From Octopus bimaculoides (Eukaryota): a DNA stretch of 36,640 nt. The first letter of the stretch is position 1. Each line of letters starts with the position of its first letter. Of this stretch, positions 7,010-36,640 are shown one piece after another. Made by a program: the position numbers and the translations under genes. Location: assembly GCF_001194135.2 (NCBI RefSeq), contig NC_069009.1, positions 531,098 to 567,737 on the forward strand, given 5' to 3'. Below the pieces are notes generated by a model. It made no database searches, was not told where the DNA came from, and saw nothing but the letters and a program-made list of their open reading frames with translations.

Positions 7010-7153
7010 TTATACACTACCTGTTATCACGTTTACGGCCTTAAAGTAAATCTTTGTCAACTTACCGTATTCAGATATAAACAGCGACTCAGTGATCGGT
7101 AATTAAATGCACTAATTAATAATTTAGTTGCAGTTAGAAGTGTTGTAGAAGCT
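7010..7153 (-). repeat. Inverted partial copy of the cassette spacer (gene 1 unit)
   Basis: Reverse complement reads CTTCTACAACACTT...TTTATATCTGAATACGGTAAGTTGACAAAGATTTACTTTAAGG. Confidence 0.75.
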
Positions 7154-7169
7154 ACATGACAAGCCTGAC

Positions 7170-8300
7170 GAGTCAGTGCTGCCATCTATTGCAGAATAGA
7201 AGAAATACAATGATGTAAAGGGAAACAAATTCTACAGCATTTCAAAAAACGGTCCAAGTAAACTATTATACGACGTCGAGGGTTCCAGCCTTTATTTCCA
7301 AAATATACATGATTCCAAATGACAGAACAAGTGGGAGTTGATGGAATATCATGTTTTCTATTACAATCTGGTTTTGTTTCCACTCATTACTCTACTCTCA
7401 TTGGTCCATGTAGTTCGACATTCTTCCTTGGCTCTCCGTCGCTTAACGACGTCGAGGGTTCCAGTTGATCCGTTCAACGGAACAGCCTGCTCGTGAAATT
7501 ATCGTGCAAGTGGCTGAGCACTCCACAGACACGTGTACCCTTAACGTTGTTCTCGGGGATATTCAGCGTGACACAGTGTGACAAGGCTGACCCTTTGAAT
7601 TACAGGCACACCAGAAACAGGAAGTAAGAGTGAGAGAAAGTTGTGGTGGAAGAGTACAGCAGGGTTCGCCACCATCCCCTGCCGGAGCATCGTGGAGCTT
7701 TTAGGTGTTTTCGCTCAATAAACACTCACAACGCCCGGTTTGGGAATCGAAACTGCGATCCTATGACCGCGAGTCCGCTGCCCTAACCACTGGGCCATTG
7801 CGCCTCCACTCTCACAGAATGAAACAAAGTACAACACTGAAATGAATCCAACCAGTTAGTAGAGCCATCTATTGGAGAATTTAAAAATATACAATCATAT
7901 AAAGGGAAGAACTGCTACAACACTTGAAACACGTACCATTTAAATAATGAATTAAGGTTTTTAATTACTGGTCACTGAGTTGCTGATTGTATCTGAATAC
8001 GATAAATTAACAATGATATACTTTAAGGTGATAATGGTTAGAACGATAATAATGTAATAGCCATTTTCTCGTCTTAAATAATAACTTCTAAACTGAAATA
8101 TCGATCTGTTGCTTACGAAAACGTATGATCGAATATTACATGTGATATAAATGAGAGTAACGTAGCATAATTAGTAAAATTGAGAGGAAAACGATTAGAG
8201 ACTACCACATTAATTAATGCTGGCCTGTTGTTTATGAAGCACTGATAAAACGGTAAGTTGACAAACGTTTACTTTAAGGTTATATTGATATTAGTAATGA
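7170..8300 (+). repeat. Cassette spacer type A (gene 2 unit), with the motif region duplicated around a SINE
   Basis: GCCATCTATTG at 7181 and 7864; TTACATGTGATATAAA; CGGTAAGTTGAC with GTAAGT at 8253. Confidence 0.75.
7426..7805 (-). mobile_element. tRNA-derived SINE family B
   Basis: Head GGCGCAATGGCCCAGTGGTTAGGGCAGCGG...TTCGATTCCC with A- and B-box-like motifs; multicopy in the window. Confidence 0.85.
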
Positions 8301-11989: not shown

Positions 11990-13069
<1,080 letters not shown>

Positions 13070-14304: not shown

Positions 14305-14940
14305 TCAGCCAGTAAGTAGCGCCATCATGTGGAGAATCGGGGAAATTTAATCGTTTAAAGGGGAATAACTTCTATAGCAGTGGAAAAGTTGTATATTAAT
14401 GGTGAATTACTATCGGGCACTGACATATAAGAATACGGTAAGTTGACAAAGATTTATTTTAAGGCTGTAATGATTAGATATAGATATATATATATGTGTT
14501 AGAAGTATAATTTCCTATTTGATGTTCGTAAAATCATAGAGATCCAAGAAGTTTATTTTCATAAAATATTTAGTAATGATAAGTGGACCACAATACGAAC
14601 AACGAGTAAAAAGTGAGAAAAATATCGAGTTATTTTGAATAGAGGTTCGCCCTTGGACACATTTGAAAATTGTTCGACAATCCACGGCGAGTACACCAAG
14701 CAAAACAAGTAGCTGAATGTGAGAAGAAAGATCAAACCAGTGTCGTAATTGTATAGCTTTCATTGATTATCTGCTGAGCTGTAAGTATTTCGTTGGAATT
14801 CACAATAAAACGGGGAGCTGGAGGGTGTCTCCGCAAGACATACTAATAGAGACGAAATGAAATTTAAACTAAAACAAATTCGATTTTACGAAGATCAAAT
14901 ACGAAATAATGAATAATAATGTTGAATGGGGAAATATATT
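14305..14940 (+). repeat. Cassette spacer type B (gene 3 unit)
   Basis: Colinear homology with 29408-30020; GCCATCATGTGG at 14321; GTAAGT at 14438. Confidence 0.75.
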
Positions 14941-15996: not shown

Positions 15997-17481
15997 ATGA
16001 AAGAAACAGCAGAAAATTATTCCTTGGAAATAGTAGATCAACTGGACACAAACTTATTCATAGAAATGACAAATTCTTCTCCTATAATGAATAATTTAAC
16101 TAAACCAAAAAACCCTGATACAGGAGAGATGCCATATCACTGTAATATCTGTGGCAAAACATTCTCTCAAAGGATTTACTTGACTAAACACAAGCGTACA
16201 CATACAGGAGAGAAGCCGTATCATTGCAACATCTGTGGTCAATCGTTTTCTGAATCTTGTAACTTGAAAACACATAAACGTGTTCACACAGGTGAGAAGC
16301 CATATCACTGTAACATTTGTGGTAAATCATTTTCTGTTAGATGTAGCTTAACTACACACAAGCATACACATTCAGAAGAGAAGCCATACCATTGTGATAT
16401 CTGTGGTAAATCATTCATTAAAAATTGTAATTTGAATACTCACAGATTCAGTCATACAGGCCTAAAGCCATATCACTGTGATATCTGTGGTAAATCATTC
16501 TCTGTTAGATTTAGCTTAACTATACACAAACATACACATACAGGAGAGAGGCCATACCATTGTGATATCTGTGGTAACTCATTCTCTGAAAGACATTCCT
16601 TAACTAAACACAGACGTACACACACAGGAGAGAAGCCATATCAGTGTGATGTCTGTGGTAAATCCTTCTCTGTTAGATTTCACTTAACTAGACACAAACA
16701 TATACATACAGGAGAGAAGCCATACCATTGCGATATCTGTGGTAAATCATTTTCTCAAAATGGTAGTTTGACTACTCACAAATTCATTCATACAGGGCAA
16801 AAACCATATCACTGTGATACCTGTGGTAAATCATTCACTGAAAGATCTTCCTTAACTAAACACAGACGTACACATACAGGAGAGAAGCCATATCAGTGTG
16901 ATATCTGCGGTAAAAGCTTTTCCTACACCAGTCACTTGAAAACGCACAAACGTATTCATACAGGTGAGAAGCCATATCATTGTGATACCTGTGGTAAAAC
17001 ATTCTCTGAAAGATATTCCTTAACTAAACACAGCCGTACACATACGGGAGAGAAGCCATATCAGTGTGATATCTGTGGTAAACAATTATGTGATGCCAGT
17101 TATTTGAAAAGGCACAAACGTATTCATACAGGTGAGAAGCCGTATCACTGTGATATCTGTGGTAAATCATTTTCTCAAAATAGTATCATAAATAAACACA
17201 AACGTACTCATACAGGAGAGAAACCATATCAGTGTGATATCTGTGGTAAATCATTCTCTTGTAATAGTCACTTGACTAATCACAAACGCATTCATACAGG
17301 AGAGAGGCCATATCACTGTGATATCTGTGGTAAATCATTTCCTCAAACCAGTGCCTTGACTAGACACAAACGGACACATACAAGAGAGAAGCCATATCAC
17401 TGTGATACCTGTGGTGAATCATTTCTGCAAATGAGTGCCTTAACTAAACACAAACTGATACATACTGAAGAGAAGCCATAA
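15997..17481 (+). CDS. ZNF gene 3: C2H2 zinc-finger protein, 16 fingers
   Basis: 494 aa = 46-aa leader + 16 x 28 aa. Ends EEKP-TAA. Confidence 0.96.
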   Translation: MKETAENYSLEIVDQLDTNLFIEMTNSSPIMNNLTKPKNPDTGEMPYHCNICGKTFSQRIYLTKHKRTHTGEKPYHCNICGQSFSESCNLKTHKRVHTGEKPYHCNICGKSFSVRCSLTTHKHTHSEEKPYHCDICGKSFIKNCNLNTHRFSHTGLKPYHCDICGKSFSVRFSLTIHKHTHTGERPYHCDICGNSFSERHSLTKHRRTHTGEKPYQCDVCGKSFSVRFHLTRHKHIHTGEKPYHCDICGKSFSQNGSLTTHKFIHTGQKPYHCDTCGKSFTERSSLTKHRRTHTGEKPYQCDICGKSFSYTSHLKTHKRIHTGEKPYHCDTCGKTFSERYSLTKHSRTHTGEKPYQCDICGKQLCDASYLKRHKRIHTGEKPYHCDICGKSFSQNSIINKHKRTHTGEKPYQCDICGKSFSCNSHLTNHKRIHTGERPYHCDICGKSFPQTSALTRHKRTHTREKPYHCDTCGESFLQMSALTKHKLIHTEEKP

Positions 17482-17749
17482 CATTGCAAATCTGTGGTAA
17501 TTCAGTTTCTGAAAATGGTGTTTTAACTATACACAAACATGTTTATACAAGAGAGGAACTATGTCATGGTCATATCTGTGGTAACTCATTCCCTCATAGA
17601 CCTAACTTAAACGTACATAAATGCATTCCTACATGAGCAAAGCCATGTTAGTGTGACATTTATGGCAAATCATTTTCTCAAAAAAGCCACATCCATACAC
17701 ATGTGGGTGTTCACCGAACAGGTCTAGCTGCATCAGTGTCAAAGTTTAT

Positions 17750-18339: not shown

Positions 18340-19650
18340 GAAACCCTATCGATTAAAATAACTATTCTGAGCATTCCTACTTAAACGGGTAACGTTTTGT
18401 AGTAGAATATATGAATACACTTTATTCAAATAACTTGGTAGAAATTTGAAAAAACTTCAATCTGAAGCTATTGACGAAATGGGACAAATGCAGCCAGTCA
18501 GCAGAGCCATCTATTGGAGAATTGGCGGAATACAATCATATAAAGGGAAATAACCTCCACAACACTTCAACCTCGTACCATTGGAAATATTAATTACGGT
18601 GATTAAATTACCAGTCATTTGATCGTTGTTTATATCTGAATACGGTAAGTCGGCAAACATTGACTTTGATGTTAATAATGCTACTGATAACGATGTAAAT
18701 AATAGAATTATGTTCACCTCTAGGTGAAACATAGGGAAACATATTTGCTTGTTTTATTTGTTTCCTATGAAATCCTATGACCGACTGTTACATGTGATAT
18801 AAAGTCAGTTATTTTATGAAATGAGAGTAAAGCGGCGCAATTAATTAGTAGAATGAAAGGAAACCGATTGAAGAAAACCACATTAATTAATGTTGTCCTG
18901 TTGGGTTTTATTTAAGCAAAGCGGTCCAGGCGCGCGCACTCGCACGCGCAAATCCGCGCTAGATAGTCGCGACTAGTCGATCCTACAACGACCATCTAGC
19001 GCAAATGCGCAAAACATGTATGAGGGTTTTTTTTTTATTTTTAAACAAAGCAAATAAATTTTCTTTTTTTGAATCTTCCCCATCTTACTCTTAAAACGTC
19101 GTTTTACGTTCTTCCAGGGTGTATTTTGGTGTCACATCTATTTCAGTAATCCCATTGTACGCACTTCAACAATCAGAATTGGTTTCATAAAGTTTTTTAA
19201 TAAGTGGAAGAAGAGTTTCAGAAGAACGGTCAGGTACAAACACTAAAAACCTATTCTAATCCTCTCTATCCCATCCTCCGTTGTATTTGCACATCATAGA
19301 TTCATCTGTTTCTACGATGTGCCCAAGTCCACCAATTTGGTAGGGGTTACGCAAAAGATAGTTACTTGTACTGATACCATTGAACAACCAGTAGATTTTG
19401 AAAGACCGACTTTTTAATGGACTCTTCACCAAAAACAGGTAGTGTATAATTTATTTACTTTGTTTAAAAAAAATTATTTACTTTGTTTAGAAAAGTAGTC
19501 GTAGGATCGACTAGGCACGACTCGCTATTGCGGATGCGCGAGTGCGGACACTGGGCTCCACTCTTCTTGAATAGTACCGTTCTGTTGTTTATGAGACATT
19601 GATAAAACGGTCAGTTGAGAAGGATTTGCTCTTAGGTTATATTAATAATT
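18340..19650 (+). repeat. Cassette spacer type A (gene 4 unit), interrupted by a Merlin element
   Basis: Motif at 18506; GTAAGT at 18645; the spacer resumes after 19587. Confidence 0.75.
18904..19578 (-). mobile_element. Merlin (IS1595/ISXO2-like) DNA transposon, internally deleted
   Basis: GG...CC termini with imperfect TIRs (GGTTTTATTTAAGCAAAGCGG / GGTACTATTCAAGAAGAGTGG). 9-bp TSD GTCCTGTTG / GTTCTGTTG. Minus strand reads IGGLGHIVETDES...FVPDRSSETLLPLIKK...SDC.SAYNGI, with frameshifts. Confidence 0.85.
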
Positions 19651-22939: not shown

Positions 22940-23480
22940 TGAGAAACCCTGTCAATTAAAATAACTATTCTGAGCCTGGTTACTACTTTAGTGGCTAATG
23001 TTTTGTAGTAGAATATAGGAATACACTTTGTTCAAGTAACTTAGTGGAAATTTGAAAATACTTCAATGTAAAGCTATTGACGAAATGGGACAAAGGCAGC
23101 CAGTCAGCAGAGCCATCTATTGGAGAATTGGTGGAATACAATCATATGAAGGGAAATAACCTCTACAACACTTCAACCTCGTACCGTGGAAAATATTAAT
23201 CACGGTTATTAATTACCAGTCGCTTCATCGTCTTAAATAATGATTTCCAAACTGAAATGTTGATTTGTTTCCTATGAAATCGTATGACCGACTGTTAAAT
23301 GTGATATAAAGTCAGTTATTTTATAAAATGAGAGTAAAGCGGCGCAATTAATTAGTAGAATGAAAGGAAACCGATTGAAGAATACCGCATTAATTAATGT
23401 TGTCCTGTTGTTAATGAGATACTGATAAAAGAGGTAAGTCGACAAGGATTTGCTCTTAAGTTATATTAATAATAATAATG
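22940..23480 (+). repeat. Cassette spacer type A (gene 5 unit)
   Basis: Highly similar to 18340-18900; motif at 23112; GTAAGT at 23434. Confidence 0.75.
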
Positions 23481-23516
23481 ATAATGGTATAACTACGGAT
23501 TTCGGTGAGACTAAAG

Positions 23517-24729: not shown

Positions 24730-25788
24730 ATGAATAATTTAACTAAACACAAAAACCCTGATGCAGAAGAAAAACCACATCACTGTACTATCTGTGGTAA
24801 ATCATTCTCTCAAAGTGGTCACTTGACTGTACACAAGCGTACACATACAGGAGAGAAGCCATATCATTGTACTATCTGTGGTAAATCATTCTCTGAAAGC
24901 GGTACCTTGACTAAACACAAACGTACACATACAGGAGAGAAGCCATATCATTGTGATATTTGTGGTAAATCATTCTCTGAAAGTAAACATTTGACTCGTC
25001 ACAAACGTACACATACAGGAGAGAAACCATATCATTGTGATATCTGTGGTAAATCATTTCCTGAAAGTAGTGACTTGAATAAACACAAGCATACACATAC
25101 AGGAGAGAAGCCATATCATTGTGATATTTGTGGTAAATCATTCTCTGAAAGTAGTAATTTGATTCGTCACAAACGTACACATACTGGAGAGAAGCCATAC
25201 CATTGTGAGATCTGTGGTAAATCATTCTCTACAAATAGTTATTTGACTTGTCACAAGCATATTCATACTGGAGAAAAACCATATCATTGTGATATCTGTG
25301 ATAAATCATTCTCTCGCACTGGAGACTTGGCTAGACACAAACTTACACATACAGGAGAGAAGCCATATCATTGTGAGATCTGTGGTAACTCATTTTCTTC
25401 CAGTAGTCATTTGAGTCGTCACAAACGTATTCATACTGGGGAAAAACCATATTATTGTGCTATTTGTGGTAAATCGTTTTCTCGAAATAGCATTTTAACT
25501 TGTCACAAAAGTATTCATACAGGAGAGAATCCATACCATTGTGATATCTGTGGTAAATCATTCTTCTATAATAGTCAGTTAGCTTATCATATACGTATTC
25601 ATACTGAAGGAAAACCACATCAATGTGATATCTGTGGTAAATCATTTTTTAGAAATAGCGATTTAACTAGTCACAAACGTGTTCATACAGGGGAGAAGCC
25701 ATATCATTGTGATATCTGCGGTAAATCATTCTCTCAAAGTGGTACTTTAACTAAACACAAATTGGCGCATATAAGAAAAAAGCCATAA
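24730..25788 (+). CDS. ZNF gene 5: C2H2 zinc-finger protein, 12 fingers, close paralogue of gene 4
   Basis: 352 aa = 16 + 12 x 28. Colinear with gene 4 but lacks gene 4 fingers 3-4. Confidence 0.96.
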
Positions 25789-26169
25789 CATTCCAATACC
25801 TGTGGTAACTATTTTTGGGAAATGGTGTCTTAACTATACATGAATATGTATAGTTGATTGAAAAGAAATAAACAACACATCAACACACTTTTTCTCCTGG
25901 TTATTTTTATGTGAAGCTTAAGAAAGTTATACTGTGGAGAATAGGAAGAGTGACCGCAATCAGTACACTGAATAATATATTGGTGGATAGAATGAAGGGT
26001 CACATGTTCGATATTTGAAGGGTGAAGCCCCTCCCCCATGACCCGACGGAGATCTCAAAAAGAACCTCGCCTCTACCCCCTGCAGAATGGACGATTACAA
26101 ATCAGAATAGCGAAGCAGTTTTCTTTAGATCAGTGTCTAGTATGGAGGAAAGGCAATGATTGAAAAGGA

Positions 26170-26316
26170 GAGAAAATGACGTCAGAAAGGGACCGGAAGT
26201 GTTACGGCATGACGTCACCTCAGGAGGCCACAAGTTAAAAACGGCTTTTTTCCTATGGTATCTGTGACGGGGTCAAGTCAGGTATTGGAAACGGTCGTAG
26301 AATAGAATATGTGAGT
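26170..26316 (+). promoter_or_regulatory. Candidate promoter (CRE-ETS-CRE) with short non-coding exon and GTGAGT donor
   Basis: TGACGTCA at 26177 and 26210, CCGGAAGT at 26193, donor AT|GTGAGT at 26311. A homologous block lies at 34840-35045. Confidence 0.55.
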
Positions 26317-26890
26317 ACACTTTGTTGGAATAATCTAGTGGAAATTTGAAAGTTGACGGAATGGGACTAATCCAAACAGACAGTAGTGCCAGCTATTGGA
26401 GAATTAAAGAAATACTAACTTATAGAAGGGAAATAACTTCTGCAACACTTCAAGCAAAGTGAAAGTTAATTATTAATAAGGTTGATCAATTACCAATCAC
26501 TGACTCGTTGTTGATATCTGACTACGGTTAAATTGACAAAGATTTAATCTAAGGCTGTTATGGTGATAATAATAATACTAATAATAATGTAAATAATGAA
26601 ATTACGTGAACTTCTCGATGTTACATTAATTATTTCGAAGCGTAAACATAACAACATTAGGAAAATGTATTTGCTGTCTTAAATAACTGCCAAACTGAAA
26701 TTTTGATCCATGATCGACTGTTACATGTGATTTAAAGGAAATTCATTTGTAAAATGAGAGTAATGTCGCATAATTAATTAGTGAAATGAGAGGAAACCGA
26801 TTGATTAATGTTGTCCTGTTGTTTATGAGGCATAGATAAAACGGTAAGTTGATAAAGATTTACTTTATGGTTATATTAATAATACTAATG
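26300..26890 (+). repeat. Cassette spacer type A (mariner-containing unit)
   Basis: Motif at 26388; GTAAGT at 26844. Confidence 0.75.
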
Positions 26891-26896
26891 ATAATG

Positions 26897-27123
26897 GGTG
26901 GCGCATTGGTTCAGTGGTTAGGGCAGCGAACTCGCGGTCATAGGATCGCGGTTTCGATTCCCCGACCGGGCGTTGTGAGTGTTTATTGAGCGAAAACACC
27001 TAAAGTGCCACGAGGCTCCGGCAGGGGATGGTGTGAGCCCTGCTGTACTCTTTTACCGCAATTTTCTCTCACTCTTACTTCCTGTTTCTGTTGTGCCTGT
27101 AATTCAAAGAGTCAGCCTTGTCA
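26897..27123 (+). mobile_element. SINE family B, 3'-truncated
   Basis: Head and 5' body; breaks off at CTTGTCA. Confidence 0.85.
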
Positions 27124-27130
27124 AGTAATT

Positions 27131-27151
27131 TTTATTGAACTTCTATTTCAG
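27131..27151 (+). promoter_or_regulatory. Candidate splice acceptor upstream of the mariner ORF
   Basis: TTTATTGAACTTCTATTTCAG|AAAATAAAAATG; the ATG lies 9 nt into the putative exon. Confidence 0.5.
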
Positions 27152-27160
27152 AAAATAAAA

Positions 27161-27562
27161 ATGACAGCCCCTATTCTTACTAACGAAATGAAAAGGCATG
27201 CTGTAGTTGTGGCTTTGAATGCTAAGCGTGGTGATTTAGAAATTTCTCGTTTTCTAAAAGTTGCAAGATCTTTCGTTCACAAGATTCGGTGTGAGTTAGA
27301 GAAAGAAGATGGAAATGTATTACCTGTGTCAAAACGTAAAAAACATTCCAAGCGCTCCGATTCTATCAGGACACCTGAATTTATTCAGGAAGTGAAGCAA
27401 AACATTGAAGACAATCCAGGAAAATCAATGAGGTCAATTGCAAAAAAATTTTGTGTGTCAGAAAAAACAATCAGAAATATTGTGCATGAAGACATCAACT
27501 ATAAATCTTACGTGAAGAAAGAAGAAAAGAAAGCTGTTTTATCAGATCCAAAAGACTTTTGA
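27161..27562 (+). CDS. Truncated Tc1/mariner (DD37D/maT-like) transposase N-terminal HTH DNA-binding region, 133 aa
   Basis: MTAPILTNEMKRHAVVVAL...LEISRFLKVARSFVHKIR...RTPEFIQEVK...DNPGKSMRSIAKKFCVSEKTIRNIVHEDINYKSYV has the two-HTH pattern of mariner-type transposases. The resemblance ends near YKSYV. No DDD domain and no TIRs are visible. Family call is from recognition, not a search. Confidence 0.8.
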   Translation: MTAPILTNEMKRHAVVVALNAKRGDLEISRFLKVARSFVHKIRCELEKEDGNVLPVSKRKKHSKRSDSIRTPEFIQEVKQNIEDNPGKSMRSIAKKFCVSEKTIRNIVHEDINYKSYVKKEEKKAVLSDPKDF

Positions 27563-27710
27563 ATATCTAAATATATCAACACAATGATGGGTTTTATGGT
27601 GCTGGATTTTTGAGGAATTTGTTATGAGAGAAGAAAGGAATGGGAATAATGAATAAACGTTTTAAGTGACATTGATTTTGTCTTTGTTGTGTTTTCATCT
27701 TCATCATCAT
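27560..27710 (+). terminator. Orphan ZNF-type 3' module (gene 1/2 subtype) after the mariner ORF
   Basis: GAGGAATTTGTTATGAGAG...GGGAATAATGAATAAACGTTTTAAGTGACATTGATTTTGTCTTTGTTGTGTTTTC closely matches the gene 1 and gene 2 modules; AATAAA at 27652-27657. Confidence 0.7.
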
Positions 27711-27730
27711 CCTAGAAACAGATGAATCTA

Positions 27731-28378
27731 GGATCTATTTTAAAACGGGGGCGCCAGTATTTTCTTAACGAAACACTAACGAAACACTTTGAAACTTGGG
27801 ACACTGGTAGAATGTGTCATATAAAACATCTTTTACTCTTAGTCTTCTTAACAAAAAAAAAAGAAGGAATTCGCAAGTTATTCCATGTTAAAGTTGTCGT
27901 ATTTCTGTAATTTCAACCAATCACTGACGTCTATTCAGCTGAATAGAGTTACTGTTTGGCGGTCATAAAAATGTTATTCCCTGACATATTTCATCCGGTT
28001 CAATCGTAATTTATGCGCATATATTGTTTATATAATAAATTACGCTGTGCGTATCTATGTGTGTAACAATTTTAGAGTTCGGATTCTAGAGTTAGGGTTA
28101 CGGTTACGGTTAACAGTCTAGTTAGGGTTAGGGTGAGGGTTAGGGGATTAATACGATATACACCGTTACAGCGCTAACTGTTTTCAACTGAATAGACGTC
28201 AGTGATTAGTAGAAATTATCGAAATAAGACAATTTTTTACATGAAATAAATTCGAATACAAAAATATTTTTCTGTTCACACAAAATAGATAAGTATACGA
28301 AGTTTGAAAGTCTTTCCGTACCAAAAACACTACATAAAACATAAATGAAAACTGGCGCCCCCGTTTTAAAATAGAACC
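27731..28378. mobile_element. MITE with 28-bp TIRs and 8-bp TSD (Merlin-like termini)
   Basis: GGATCTATTTTAAAACGGGGGCGCCAGT ... ACTGGCGCCCCCGTTTTAAAATAGAACC. TSD TGAATCTA at 27723-27730 and 28379-28386. Inner inverted repeat at 27915-27943 / 28183-28210. Confidence 0.9.
28091..28146 (+). repeat. Telomere-like (TTAGGG/TTACGG)n tract inside the MITE
   Basis: GTTAGGGTTACGGTTACGG...GTTAGGGTTAGGGTGAGGGTTAGGGG. Confidence 0.85.
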
Positions 28379-28637
28379 TGAATCTATGATGTGCAAGCGC
28401 AAATACAACGGAGGATGGGATAGAGAGGATAAAAATAGGTGTTTAGTCTTCAGACCGTTCTTCTGAAACTGTTCTTCTACTTATTAAAAAAATTATGAAA
28501 CCAGGGTCGACTATATATTCTGATTGTTGGAGTGCGTCGTACAATGGGATTACTGAAATAGATGTGACACCAAAAATACACCCTGGAAGAACGTAAAACG
28601 ACGTTGTAAGATGGGGAAGATTCAACAGAAACAAAAT

Positions 28638-28732
28638 NNNNNNNNNNNNNNNNNNNNNNNNNNNNNNNNNNNNNNNNNNNNNNNNNNNNNNNNNNNNNNN
28701 NNNNNNNNNNNNNNNNNNNNNNNNNNNNNNNN
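28638..28732. other. Assembly gap
   Basis: Run of N. Confidence 1.
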
Positions 28733-28767
28733 ATTTACTTTTGTTTAAAAATAGACCCCTCATACAT

Positions 28768-29140
28768 CCAGTGGTTAGGGTAGCGGTCTCGCGGTCATAG
28801 GATCATAGGATCGCGGTTTCGATTCCCAGACCGGGCGTTGTGAGTGTTTATTGAGCGAAAACACCTAAAGTTCCACGAGGCTCCGGCAGGGGATGGTGGC
28901 GAACCCTGCTGTACTCTTTCATGACAACTTTCTCTCACTCTTACTTCCTGTTTCTGTTGTGTCTGTAATTCAAAAGGGTCAGCCTTGTCACACTGTGTCA
29001 CACTGAATATCCCCCAAGAACTACGTTAAGGGTACACGTGTCTGTGGTGTGCTCAGCCACTTGCACATTAATTTCACGAGCAGGCTGTTCCGTTGATCGG
29101 ATCAACAGGAATCCTCGTCGTCGTTAAGCGACGGAGTTCC
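28768..29140 (+). mobile_element. SINE family B
   Basis: Near full length; followed by a shared extension and a second 3' end (to about 29350). Confidence 0.85.
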
Positions 29141-29407
29141 AAGGAAGGAAGGAAGGATGTCGAACTACATGGACCAATGAGAGTAGAGTAATGAGTGGAA
29201 ACAAAACCAGATTGTAATAGAAAACATGATATTCCATCAACTCCCACTTGTTCTATCATTTGGAATCGTGAATATTTTTAAAATATAGGCTGTTCCGTTG
29301 ATCGGGTCAACTGGAACCCTCGACGTCGTAAGCGACGGAGTGCCAACCACAACAATAAGTACACCCGCTTTCTGTCATAGTAACTGGAACTTAATTTTCT
29401 CCTTGGT

Positions 29408-30160
29408 AGCCAGTTAGTAGAGCCATCTCGGGGAGAACCGGAGAAATTTTATCGTATGAAGGGGAATAACTTTTACAGCAGTCGAAAATTTTAATTATTA
29501 ATGGTGATTTAATATCGGACACTGATACGTAAGAATACGGTAAGTTGACAAAAGATTTATTTTAAGGCTGTAAATGATAAAAAGATAGATCATAATAAGG
29601 TGATTTCCTATTAGATGTTCGTAAAATCATAGCGATCCAAGAAGTTTAGGTAATATTTCGTTACTTTATTTGAAGAAAATATTTCATAATTATAAGTGGA
29701 ACATACTACGACCAGCGAGTAAAACGTGAAGGATGAGTTACTTTGAATAGAGTTTCGTCCTGGGCACATTTGAGAATTCTTCAACAGTCCAAGTCGCTAA
29801 ATATGAGAAAGATCGAACCAGTGTCGTAATTGTGTGGCTTTCATTGATTATCTGATGGTCTCGAAGTATTACGTTGGAATTCACAATAAAACGATTAGCA
29901 GGTGAGTGCCCCCACAGGAGATGCTAATCGGGATGAAATTAAATTTAAACGAAAATAAATTTGATTTTACGAACATCAAATAAGAAATGACCAATAATAA
30001 TGTTGAATGGGAAATTATTATGGCTCCTCGGTTTTGGATATTACTTCCAAATTGAAAAGTTGATTTGTTAATTATAAAAGCCTATGTTACGGTTACATGT
30101 GATATAAATTAATTGAATTGGTAAGATGAGAGTAATGCTGTCTATCTAATTGATTGGGAA
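29408..30160 (+). repeat. Cassette spacer type B (gene 6 unit)
   Basis: Homologous to 14305-14940; motif at 29422; GTAAGT at 29540. Confidence 0.75.
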
Positions 30161-34517: not shown

Positions 34518-34800
34518 TAACATGCAAGTGGTTGAGCACTCCACAGACACGTGTACCCTTAACGTAGTTCTCGAGGAGATTCAGCGTGACACAGTGTGAC
34601 ATGGCTGACCCTTTGAATTACAGGCACAACAGAAACAGGAAGTAAGAGCGAGAGAAAGTTGTGGAGGAAGAGTACAGCAGGGTTCGCCACCATCCCCTGC
34701 TGGAGCCTCGTGGGGCTTTTAGGTGTTTTCACTCCAATAAACACTCACAACGCCCGGTCTGGGAGTCGAAACCGCAATCCTATGACCACGAGACCGCTGC
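34518..34800 (-). mobile_element. SINE family B, partial
   Basis: Matches 7500-7790. Confidence 0.85.
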
Positions 34801-34839
34801 GCGTCCACCAGTGTCAAGTGTAGAGGAAGGACAATGATT

Positions 34840-35045
34840 GGAAATGACGTGAAAAAAAAAAGGGGGCCGGCAGTACGTCAACATGACGTAACCTCAGGAA
34901 GTCAGAGGTTTTATTTATTTAATTATGGGTTTCAGCCAAGTGGCTGTGGTCATGCTGGAGCACCAGAAGACGATTTCATTCTAGCGGTATCAGCGACAGG
35001 GTCAAGTCCTGTGATGGAAAGGGTCGTGGAGTAGAACATGTGAGT
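34840..35045 (+). promoter_or_regulatory. Second copy of the candidate promoter / exon 1 / donor
   Basis: TGACGT at 34845, TGACGTAA near 34884, CCGGCAGT and CAGGAAGT, donor AT|GTGAGT at 35040. Confidence 0.5.
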
Positions 35046-35650
35046 ACACTTTATTAAAATAATCTGGTGAAAAATTGAAAAAACAAAGGTGCAGTTGTTG
35101 AAAGAATGGGACAAAGAAACGGAACGGAAACCAAGCAGTCAGTAGAGCCATCTATTGGAGAATTCAAGAAATACAATCATATCAAGGGAAATAACTTCTA
35201 CTTTACTTCAACCTCGGTCCAGTTAAATTATTAAGGTGATTGAATTACCAATCACTGAGTCGTTGTTTATATCTGAATACGATAAGTTGACGAAGATTTA
35301 CTCTAAGGTGATAATAACACTAATAATAAAGTAATTATGTGAACCTCTCGATGTTACAGTAATTATTTTGAAGCGGAAACTTAACAATGTAAGGAAAATA
35401 AGTTTGCCGCCTTAAATACTGACTTCCAAACTGAAATGTTGAAATGCTGCTTCTGAAACCCTCTGATCGACTGTTATATGTGATATAAAGGAAATTGATT
35501 TGTAAAGTGAGAATAATACATGATCAATTAGTTAAATGAGAAGAAACCGATCGAAGAATACCACATTAATTTATATTGTTCTGTTGTTTATGAAACACTA
35601 ATTAAACGGTAAGTTGACACAAATTTACTTTAAGGTTATATTAATAATAG
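35030..35650 (+). repeat. Cassette spacer type A (start of the next unit; gene presumably beyond the window)
   Basis: Motif at 35147; GTAAGT at 35609. Downstream 36040-36400 is homologous to intron parts of units 2 and 4. Confidence 0.75.
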
Positions 35651-35659
35651 TAATGATGG

Positions 35660-36016
35660 AGGTGCAATGGCCCAGTGGTTAGGGCAGCGGACTCGCGGTT
35701 TCGATTCCCAGAGTGAGTGTTTATTGACCGAAAACACCGAAAGCCCCACGAGGCTCCCGCAGGGGATGGTGGCGAGCCTTGCTGTACTCTTCTACCACAA
35801 CTTTCTCTCGCTCTTACTTCCTGTTTCTGTTGTGCCTGTAATTCAAAGGGTCAGCCTTGTCACACTGTGTCACGCTGAATATCCCCGAGAACTATGTTAA
35901 GGGTACACGTGTCTGTGGGGTGCTCAGCCACTTGCACGTTAGTTTCACGAGCAGGCTGTTCCGTTGATCGGATCAACTGGAACCCTCGTCGTCGTTAAGC
36001 GACGGAGTGCCAACAA
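35660..36016 (+). mobile_element. SINE family B
   Basis: Head with small deletions; full 3' end. Confidence 0.85.
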
Positions 36017-36417: not shown

Positions 36418-36640
36418 CAGGGGTTTTCAAACTTTTTGACTTGCGGACCCCTTTATATTTCAGGCTTTACCTTAGGGAACCCCTTATAAACGCTTATGAA
36501 ATTTATACATAAATATTTGCTTAAAATAACATATTTTTACATTATGTATAAACCAGGGGTTTTCAAACTTTTTGACTTGCGGACCCCTTTATATTTCAGG
36601 CTTTACCTTAGGGAACCCCTTATAAACGCTTATGAAATTT
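36418..36640 (+). mobile_element. hAT-type terminal sequence, tandemly duplicated (136-bp period)
   Basis: CAGGGGTTTTCAAACTTTTT at 36418 and 36554 resembles hAT/Charlie-type TIR starts. Confidence 0.6.

Follow-up and report, generated by a model that had tools for sequence, protein, structure and literature searches.

A conserved DNA-binding-domain fragment of a maT-like transposon at the 3′ end of an octopus C2H2 zinc-finger gene

A stretch of 36,640 nt from the Octopus bimaculoides genome (the window; coordinates below are window positions unless a locus is named) carries, among a cluster of C2H2 zinc-finger (ZNF) genes, a unit at 27121-27711 in which the leader and open reading frame (ORF) of a transposon are joined to a ZNF-type 3′ module. 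We conclude with high confidence that the unit is a conserved stump derived from a maT transposon, that it holds a DNA-binding domain (DBD) only, that it is attached to the 3′ end of a gene of the ZNF type, and that its surroundings have been rearranged in this genome. As to its role, we give about even credence to a conserved, transcribed, transposon-derived 3′ exon or untranslated region (UTR) of ZNF transcripts in which the open frame is incidental. An earlier note, made from the letters alone, had described the same place as a ZNF cassette whose finger exon was replaced by a mariner transposase DBD. The parts it had listed, namely a promoter-like block, two splice donors, a truncated short interspersed nuclear element (SINE), an acceptor, a 133-codon ORF and an AATAAA, are all in place. 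Our comparisons cover two loci of O. sinensis (L001 and L002, the latter on CM016885.1 around 18.9 Mb) and one of O. vulgaris (L008), which together with the window provide four octopus copies of the unit, as well as four related elements from other organisms (L003, L004, L005 and L006), three of which are decayed (L003, L004 and L006).

The ORF of the unit (27161-27562; 133 codons plus stop, from the ORF list and our reading of the sequence) encodes peptides that include FLKVAR and SDSIRTPEFIQEVK. It has 35 homologues at E ≤ 1e-3, and the best of those outside octopuses, at 59-73% identity, run on into a DDE_3 domain. By tblastn, transposase residues 1-120 align with 27161-27520 at 72.5% identity (E = 4e-51). 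The non-octopus homologues share the start motif M-x4-LT-x-EMKRHAV, indicating that the ORF starts at the transposase's own ATG, and they extend beyond window residue ~118 into ...MRKGQFMS...FSDEK.... An AlphaFold2 model computed with 25 sequences consists of two three-helix bundles, residues 8-49 and 72-112, with a predicted local distance difference test score (pLDDT) above 90 and a basic linker between them. The top structural matches of this model in Foldseek are the PAX6 paired domain, Mos1, the SETMAR DBD (PDB 7s03) and the bipartite DBD of Tc3, with probabilities of 0.97-1.0 and E-values of only ~0.01-0.06. At the sequence level, Pfam helix-turn-helix (HTH) matches of the ORF stay under the gathering cut-offs, and a profile search of the PDB sequences with the ORF returned generic HTH hits only (E ≥ 0.03). 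In line with the model, the ORF holds the complete bipartite HTH-linker-HTH DBD of a transposase of the Tc1/mariner superfamily.

The parent element of the fragment is, by the sequences of its relatives, maT-like (DD37D, Pfam DDE_3) and not mariner proper (DD34D; Transposase_1 / HTH_48). A D-91-D-37-D spacing (FSDEK...QQD-37-D) is present in the translations of two decayed elements, including a conceptual one of L003, and in four of the five intact relatives, and full-length relatives score over threshold for Pfam DDE_3 without a match to mariner's Transposase_1. DD37D denotes the maT family of Tc1/mariner transposons (bioRxiv 10.1101/2022.10.13.512200), and the earlier label "mariner" is therefore correct for the superfamily only; the 37-residue D-D spacing and the presence of DDE_3 alone in the relatives speak against mariner proper. 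Relatives in the maT family possess a bipartite HTH, a DD37D triad and terminal inverted repeats (TIRs) that start with CAGGGTGCG beside a TA, which in L003, L004 and L006 lie ~90-100 nt 5′ of the ATG. The window ORF has the bipartite HTH in common with them, whereas the window copy is a non-autonomous stump with an internal deletion and with neither TIRs nor catalytic domain; the earlier note, too, had seen none of the latter two. The catalytic triad is absent from it, tblastn finds nothing past transposase residue 142, the family TIR consensus has no match in the window with up to 3 mismatches allowed, and no inverted repeats flank the unit in the window.

The stretch 27121-27565 is a maT-like fragment that lacks TIRs and anything past residue 142 and is joined to a ZNF 3′UTR / poly(A) module. 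The unit consists of the following parts:

27121-27160, plus strand: transposon 5′ leader with the polypyrimidine/CAG acceptor (27141-27151) and an AATAAA (27154-27159); 100% identity across the four octopus copies.
27161-27520, plus strand: transposase residues 1-120 in the native frame and from the native ATG, with HTH1 (helices in 8-49), the basic linker and HTH2 (helices in 72-112), by tblastn, AlphaFold2 and Foldseek.
27521-27562, plus strand: ORF tail EEKKAVLSDPKDF and stop; transposon read out of frame beyond an internal deletion of ~22 nt.
27562-27711, plus strand: ZNF-type 3′UTR / poly(A) module, its AATAAA lying at 27652-27657; genes 1 and 2 have 3′ flanks that are 81-88% identical to it.

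Transposase residues 130-142 align by tblastn at 27526-27564 in another frame, with ~22 nt lost before them, and this deletion is common to all four octopus copies. Since the transposon continues out of frame beyond the deletion, the 13 codons with which the ORF ends are transposon sequence in a shifted frame. The junction between transposon and ZNF 3′UTR lies at about 27560-27570, coinciding with the stop codon of the ORF. The position of about 27520, formerly taken for the end of the transposon, is the internal deletion instead, and the transposon runs to about 27565.

The 40 nt 5′ of the ATG, including a strong 3′ splice-site-like sequence 9 nt from the ATG, are the transposon's own leader. 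A T-rich leader of the form ...YAG/AAAWTAAYA-ATGACA (the slash follows the AG) also occurs in the related elements of other organisms, for instance as ttatgctttag/aaaataataATGaca in L003, as ttatttttcag/aaattaacaATGaca in L004 and as tttttttag...ATG in L005. The acceptor TTCTATTTCAG at 27141-27151 is the same 11-mer that precedes the finger exon in genes 1, 4 and 5, and the ZNF acceptors match the transposon leader in this 11-mer and about 6 further bases only. Its description as a ZNF acceptor thus holds for the identity of the 11-mer and fails for its origin, since the leader is native to the transposon. A canonical AATAAA lies within the leader, 2 nt 5′ of the ATG; in the sister species it stands ~240 nt 3′ of the ZNF stop codon and could be a proximal poly(A) signal.

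At the other end of the unit, 27562-27708 is similar to the sequence flanking gene 1 on its 3′ side (3522-3363, minus strand, 81%) and to that of gene 2 (12196-12306, 88%), in agreement with the gene 1/2 subtype that had been assigned to the module. The same module sits 226-389 nt beyond the stop codons of these two genes, without the transposon. Two further stretches were considered as transposon sequence and rejected. The 3′ module had looked by eye like a continuation of the transposon (region ...PAEDDVIWFFSDEK), and local alignment against shuffles gave z-scores of -0.3 to 1.9; the 150 nt 5′ of the unit in O. sinensis, as a decayed TIR or transposon 5′ end, scored -0.3 to 0.2 against 6.6-14 for true TIR pairs.

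The same doubly truncated fragment, likewise without TIRs, is found in O. vulgaris and at two O. sinensis loci, so that the synteny check proposed in the earlier note comes out positive. O. bimaculoides split from O. vulgaris/O. sinensis ~34 million years (My) ago, and the latter two split from each other ~2.5 My ago (PMC10700109). L001 and L008 are collinear with the window through gene 4 with its 3′ flank, the spacer, gene 5, the unit (92% identity over 27121-27711) and the post-unit repeats. The gene 5 orthologues lie at L008 8698-9756 (352 aa) and L001 9847-11301; the coding sequence of gene 5 is 91.9% identical without gaps between the window and the sister species, and the gene 5 alignment 89%. 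In L001, L002 and L008, ~205 nt separate the ZNF stop codon from the start of the unit, a stretch that in O. vulgaris/O. sinensis is free of promoter, intron and SINE. This position after the finger exon of the gene-5 orthologue identifies the gene 1/2-type module as gene 5's own 3′ end. The module subtype had been taken to mark a separate seventh cassette, which cannot be maintained as the sister-clade orthologue of gene 5 carries exactly this module, and the finger exon is not replaced, since the sister-clade unit sits after an intact one.

All four copies agree in their 5′ limit, in the internal deletion and in the junction between transposon and module, with identical truncation points across the three close species compared, and the fragment must thus have arisen once, before the species split. 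A recent double-deletion accident, the other option offered earlier, is incompatible with these shared junctions in O. vulgaris and both O. sinensis loci and with a conservation above that of the flanks. In the alignment of the unit, codons 96, 108 and 118 contradict the species tree by uniting L002 either with L001 or with O. vulgaris, which is a hint of gene conversion between the two loci of the O. sinensis/O. vulgaris clade. The second O. sinensis copy is immediately preceded by an uninterrupted tandem array of ~10 kb (L002 10001-20201) of near-identical C2H2 fingers with several frameshifts.

What lies directly upstream of the unit differs between the window and the sister clade. In the latter, the unit is preceded by a 150-nt segment which the window lacks; the window has 1.28 kb at 25840-27123 instead, comprising pre-promoter sequence, the promoter-like block, a non-coding first exon, ~600 nt of an intron and 227 nt of a SINE. 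The features from gene 5 to the unit are:

24730-25788, plus strand: finger exon ORF of ZNF gene 5, 352 aa; the upstream partner of the unit in the sister species.
25840-25846: left breakpoint, where in the alignment the conserved 3′ flank of gene 5 stops at ...aactatac and downstream-type "pre-promoter" sequence starts.
25847-26141, plus strand: pre-promoter segment, 81% and 72% identical to L008 16077-16251 and 16584-16680, and also similar to L001 18004-18607.
26177-26215, plus strand: promoter-like block with cAMP response element (CRE), ETS and CRE motifs (CRE-ETS-CRE), found by pattern match, one copy in the window.
26216-26316, plus strand: putative non-coding first exon, its start approximate, ending at the donor GTGAGT (26311-26316), from reading the sequence.
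26317-26896, plus strand: intron-like cassette spacer with a second donor-like GTAAGT (26844-26849); 66-76% identity to other spacers.
26897-27123, plus strand: SINE, 3′-truncated at the right breakpoint, where it and the unit share a tca microhomology.

Parts of the 1.28-kb piece have counterparts 5.5-8 kb 3′ of the unit in O. vulgaris/O. sinensis, ahead of the next ZNF gene, and the homologue of the pre-promoter segment lies ~5.5-6 kb downstream of the unit there. The presence of a promoter and intron next to the unit is specific to this genome or this assembly, reflecting a rearrangement in this lineage or, with lower probability, a false join at the SINE. With this piece between gene 5 and the unit, the window unit probably lies, as far as the sequence can tell, inside the first intron of a transcription unit that starts at about 26.2 kb. 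Of the routes considered for the rearrangement (tandem duplication plus deletion, two deletions, or a transposition with three breakpoints), no single one clearly stands out; a duplication of recent date is made less likely by the SINE at 28769, whose identity to the truncated copy is only 89%.

A mis-join via the SINE at 26897-27123 in a gapped short-read scaffold would concern the juxtaposition of promoter and intron with the unit only, and would mean that the real upstream neighbour of the unit is a different one. We consider this quite improbable. The junction does fall at the edge of a 227-bp repeat with at least 5 copies in the window, N-gaps are nearby (28639-28733 and about 23.85-24.2 kb), and the arrangement is seen in neither sister genome. 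However, 24.4-28.6 kb is contiguous and free of Ns, the join between gene 5 and the pre-promoter segment at 25840-25846 lies in unique sequence, and the join between SINE and unit must be real as it is outside the repeat.

The unit has diverged about three times more slowly than its surroundings. Between the window and the sister clade it differs by 8%, compared to about 20% in the adjacent non-coding sequence; the benchmarks for this comparison are the end of the gene-5 intron (23% diverged), its 5′UTR (17%) and the synonymous divergence (dS) of gene 5 (0.245), with a Fisher P of 1.6e-7. Even the comparison of O. vulgaris with O. sinensis shows a divergence of 1.2% in the unit versus 4.6% in the 260 nt upstream. 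A unit that changes more slowly than its flanks is constrained, which disfavours a neutral relic. Divided by part, divergence amounts to 0% in the leader, 6-15% in the 3′ module, 6-7% in the DBD codons and 12.5% in the frameshifted tail, and none of the four copies differs in the first 84 nt, which span the leader and the start of the ORF. Constraint is about equally strong in the non-coding leader, the 3′ module and the ORF.

How did a transposase fragment come to be retained at this place? We suggest that it inserted into the 3′UTR of an ancestor of gene 5, between stop codon and poly(A) module. The unit has been carried along with ZNF duplications. The unit would serve as a distal 3′UTR or alternative 3′-terminal exon of transcripts of the ZNF cluster and would be kept for reasons at the RNA level, for instance 3′-end formation or UTR regulation, with the DBD frame as a by-product that is not, or weakly, selected as protein. 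Several observations weigh against such an incidental frame and favour a genuine coding exon, whose product would be a derivative of the maT transposase that binds DNA only and is catalytically dead; this updated form of the earlier note's idea we place on the unlikely side. This protein would be either a stand-alone product of 133 aa or a fusion to upstream ZNF exons via the transposon acceptor, as in KRABINER or SETMAR; it would bind maT TIRs or TIR-derived sites in a sequence-specific manner, and the window lineage would have gained a promoter and a 5′ exon for it. Its complete bipartite HTH is modelled to fold confidently, its native ATG follows 9 nt after a perfectly conserved acceptor within the invariant 84 nt, and an undisrupted ORF of the same 133 codons is present in both the window and O. 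vulgaris. The ratio of non-synonymous to synonymous divergence (dN/dS, or omega) is below 1 in every pair of window and sister copy (0.29-0.45; 0.3-0.57 over the estimates taken together), most changes fall at third codon positions (4/8/11 at positions 1/2/3), and codons 8-112 have 12 changes that are synonymous and 13 that are not (binomial P about 0.02). The dN of the unit, 0.056-0.066, is the same as that of the adjoining ZNF gene (0.052), and the whole unit changes three times more slowly than its flanks. Furthermore, the ORF counts as coding in predicted gene models of O. sinensis and O. vulgaris. Closest to it are two protein models from O. sinensis, with the 133-aa O. vulgaris CAI9743754.1 in the same cluster. 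The O. sinensis model XP_036370217.1 opens with an ATG shortly after the beginning of the gene-5-orthologue exon, followed by a weak CTG/GTATTT donor that is spliced exactly into tttcag/aaaataaaaATG, the acceptor of the unit; a second one, "ZNF 22-like", links three fingers to the ORF and stops at the nonsense codon of L002. As predictions, these models resemble a KRABINER-type capture. In addition, O. sinensis L001 has models of 915 aa and 436 aa that span >18-22 kb over several ZNF cassettes, which suggests long spliced transcripts between cassettes.

The case for a coding exon is countered by the copies themselves. L002 has a TGA at codon 57, and an additional T (+1; L001 position ~11811) shifts the frame of L001 near codon 108. 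This T lengthens a run of Ts and may be a mistake of the long-read assembly, and L002 is a younger duplicate that is perhaps dispensable. Across the four copies, parsimony yields 15 synonymous and 23 non-synonymous changes (one of them nonsense) where ~73% non-synonymous would be expected (omega about 0.57, P about 0.06), simulations of substitution placement in the ORF give P values of 0.03-0.17, and most changes on the branch of O. vulgaris and O. sinensis are non-synonymous (1 synonymous, 5 non-synonymous, omega about 1.3). The tests are borderline and not mutually independent, and with dN/dS at about 0.4-0.6 overall, protein-level constraint is no more than suggestive. The tail is out-of-frame junk, the ATG and donor of XP_036370217.1 are not conserved in the window (ATA and GA), and the upstream context differs among the species. 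Among the recorded homologues, none is a window-species protein that contains the ORF, and the exact 133-aa ORF is absent from a collection of 15 billion proteins. A dead remnant evolving neutrally is in our assessment improbable; the conservation would then be an artefact of an inflated benchmark, through paralogous alignments in a tandem array with fast turnover, or of a low local mutation rate. Orthology in ZNF arrays is indeed uncertain, with genes 4 and 5 sharing their best O. sinensis match, and the sites at odds with the tree point to gene conversion. At the observed number of substitutions, the frame stays open by chance in 30-50% of the simulated cases, and two copies are disrupted. 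Nonetheless, the benchmark sequences are contiguous with gene 5 and collinear, the three gene-5 benchmarks (dS, intron and 5′UTR) mutually agree, and the lower divergence of the unit recurs in the comparison of O. vulgaris with O. sinensis.

The promoter-like block TGACGTCA..CCGGAAGT..TGACGT, of the pattern TGACGT..CGGAAGT..TGACGT, has a single match in the window and 0 in 100 shuffles. Its sole window paralogue is at 34809-34910 (71%), and that of the first exon at 34986-35055 (83%). The first exon holds a short upstream ORF with a stop before the donor; a start codon at the exon's end proved to be a misreading, as its G is part of the GTGAGT donor, and the exon is non-coding. Block, first exon and GTGAGT donor occur at 26.1 kb and 34.8 kb only in the window, whereas in the other cassettes the donor is degenerate (ATGAAT or AGGAAT), and the arrangement is hence not the standard cassette for which it had been taken. 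At the homologous O. vulgaris site the block is absent; a miniature inverted-repeat transposable element (MITE) is there instead, beside an ATGAGT at the donor position. The identity of 66-76% of the spacer at 26317-26896 refers to the spacers 18403-18871, 23009-23487, 34986-35650 and L008 17681-18295. Nearly every cassette spacer carries the motif acGGTAAGTTGAyAAAGATTTAyttta.gg followed by ataataata..., which includes the GTAAGT formerly taken for a second donor. Copies of this motif and of the SINE family in the window are:

26520-26590 and 26840-26897: spacer motif, twice in the spacer upstream of the unit.
7039-7071, 14432-14464, 19579-19649, 29533-29573 and 35276-35329: spacer motif in other places.
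26897-27123, 28769-29150 and 35651-36000, plus strand: SINE.
7579-7807 and 34597-34800, minus strand: SINE of the same family.

The SINE upstream of the unit is ~90% identical to the four other copies and ends early, at 27123, compared to the full copies at 28769-29150 and 35651-36000. The family has a tRNA-like head, and ARAGORN detected no tRNA in the SINE. It stands at the same place in two paralogous spacers, truncated at 26.9 kb and full length at 35.65 kb, which makes the insertion older than the duplication. Directly 3′ of the unit is a MITE-like element (27722-28387) with inverted repeats at 27730-27761 / 28348-28379 (94%) and 27850-27951 / 28175-28276 (73%). Relatives of it form tandem units in O. 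sinensis (L001 14507-15101), and O. vulgaris has one as an insertion (L008 ~16810-17686). The centre of the window element contains TTAGGG-like telomere-type repeats (28092-28146), similar to ttagggttagggg in the O. vulgaris copy (L008 ~17355-17385). At the window end, a sequence of ~85 bp, ggggttttcaaactttttgacttgcggacccc...cttatgaaattt, occurs twice (~36419-36500 and ~36554-36640).

Captures of transposases by host genes provide the closest known parallels. KRABINER, a bat fusion of ZNF112 with the Mlmar1 mariner, is one of several host-transposase fusions (Cosby et al., bioRxiv 10.1101/2020.05.07.082677). As in KRABINER, a Tc1/mariner element lies within or beside a C2H2-ZNF gene, and the predicted octopus transcripts link upstream host exons to the transposase DBD. 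A transposon-borne acceptor directly 5′ of the ATG, as at this locus, is likewise a feature used in known transposase captures. In contrast, KRABINER has kept a full-length transposase and gained a KRAB effector, and its expression, TIR binding and repression have been demonstrated experimentally, whereas the octopus unit, known here from sequence, has a DBD alone with no effector domain attached and is broken in two of its four copies. Similar to the octopus unit, SETMAR (primate SET plus Hsmar1) retains a transposase DBD at a fixed locus after the loss of mobility, and its DBD is among the top structural matches of our model; it differs in its descent from mariner proper (DD34D), in keeping a modified catalytic domain, in the fusion to SET and in its clear purifying selection. 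CG4570 and cag of Drosophila (PMC13548663) likewise consist of the HTH module only, with neither a DDE/D domain nor TIRs, and are syntenic across species. They pass stringent tests, however: their ORFs have stayed intact across many species, purifying selection on them is significant and they are expressed, whereas for the octopus unit three closely related species were compared, selection is borderline and copies are disrupted. Our full-text literature search found no capture of a transposase DBD by a cephalopod host gene and no description of this locus.

Vertebrate host genes, often of the KRAB-ZNF type, have repeatedly captured transposase DBDs through an acceptor carried by the transposon. 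The octopus locus could represent a cephalopod capture in progress, in which a maT DBD exon with its own acceptor was conserved for ~34 My at the 3′ end of a C2H2-ZNF gene and was then rearranged behind a promoter and 5′ exon, and whose product may be a stand-alone TIR-binding regulator or a dominant-negative inhibitor of maT elements. This scenario we regard as unlikely, yet the ingredients for a capture and the clear sequence conservation make the locus a concrete candidate that is cheap to test.

Finally, octopus genomes combine a huge expansion of C2H2-ZNF genes with a heavy transposon load. If the unit is only a conserved piece of 3′UTR, it would still show how a transposon fragment becomes a stable part of ZNF transcripts and spreads by duplication.

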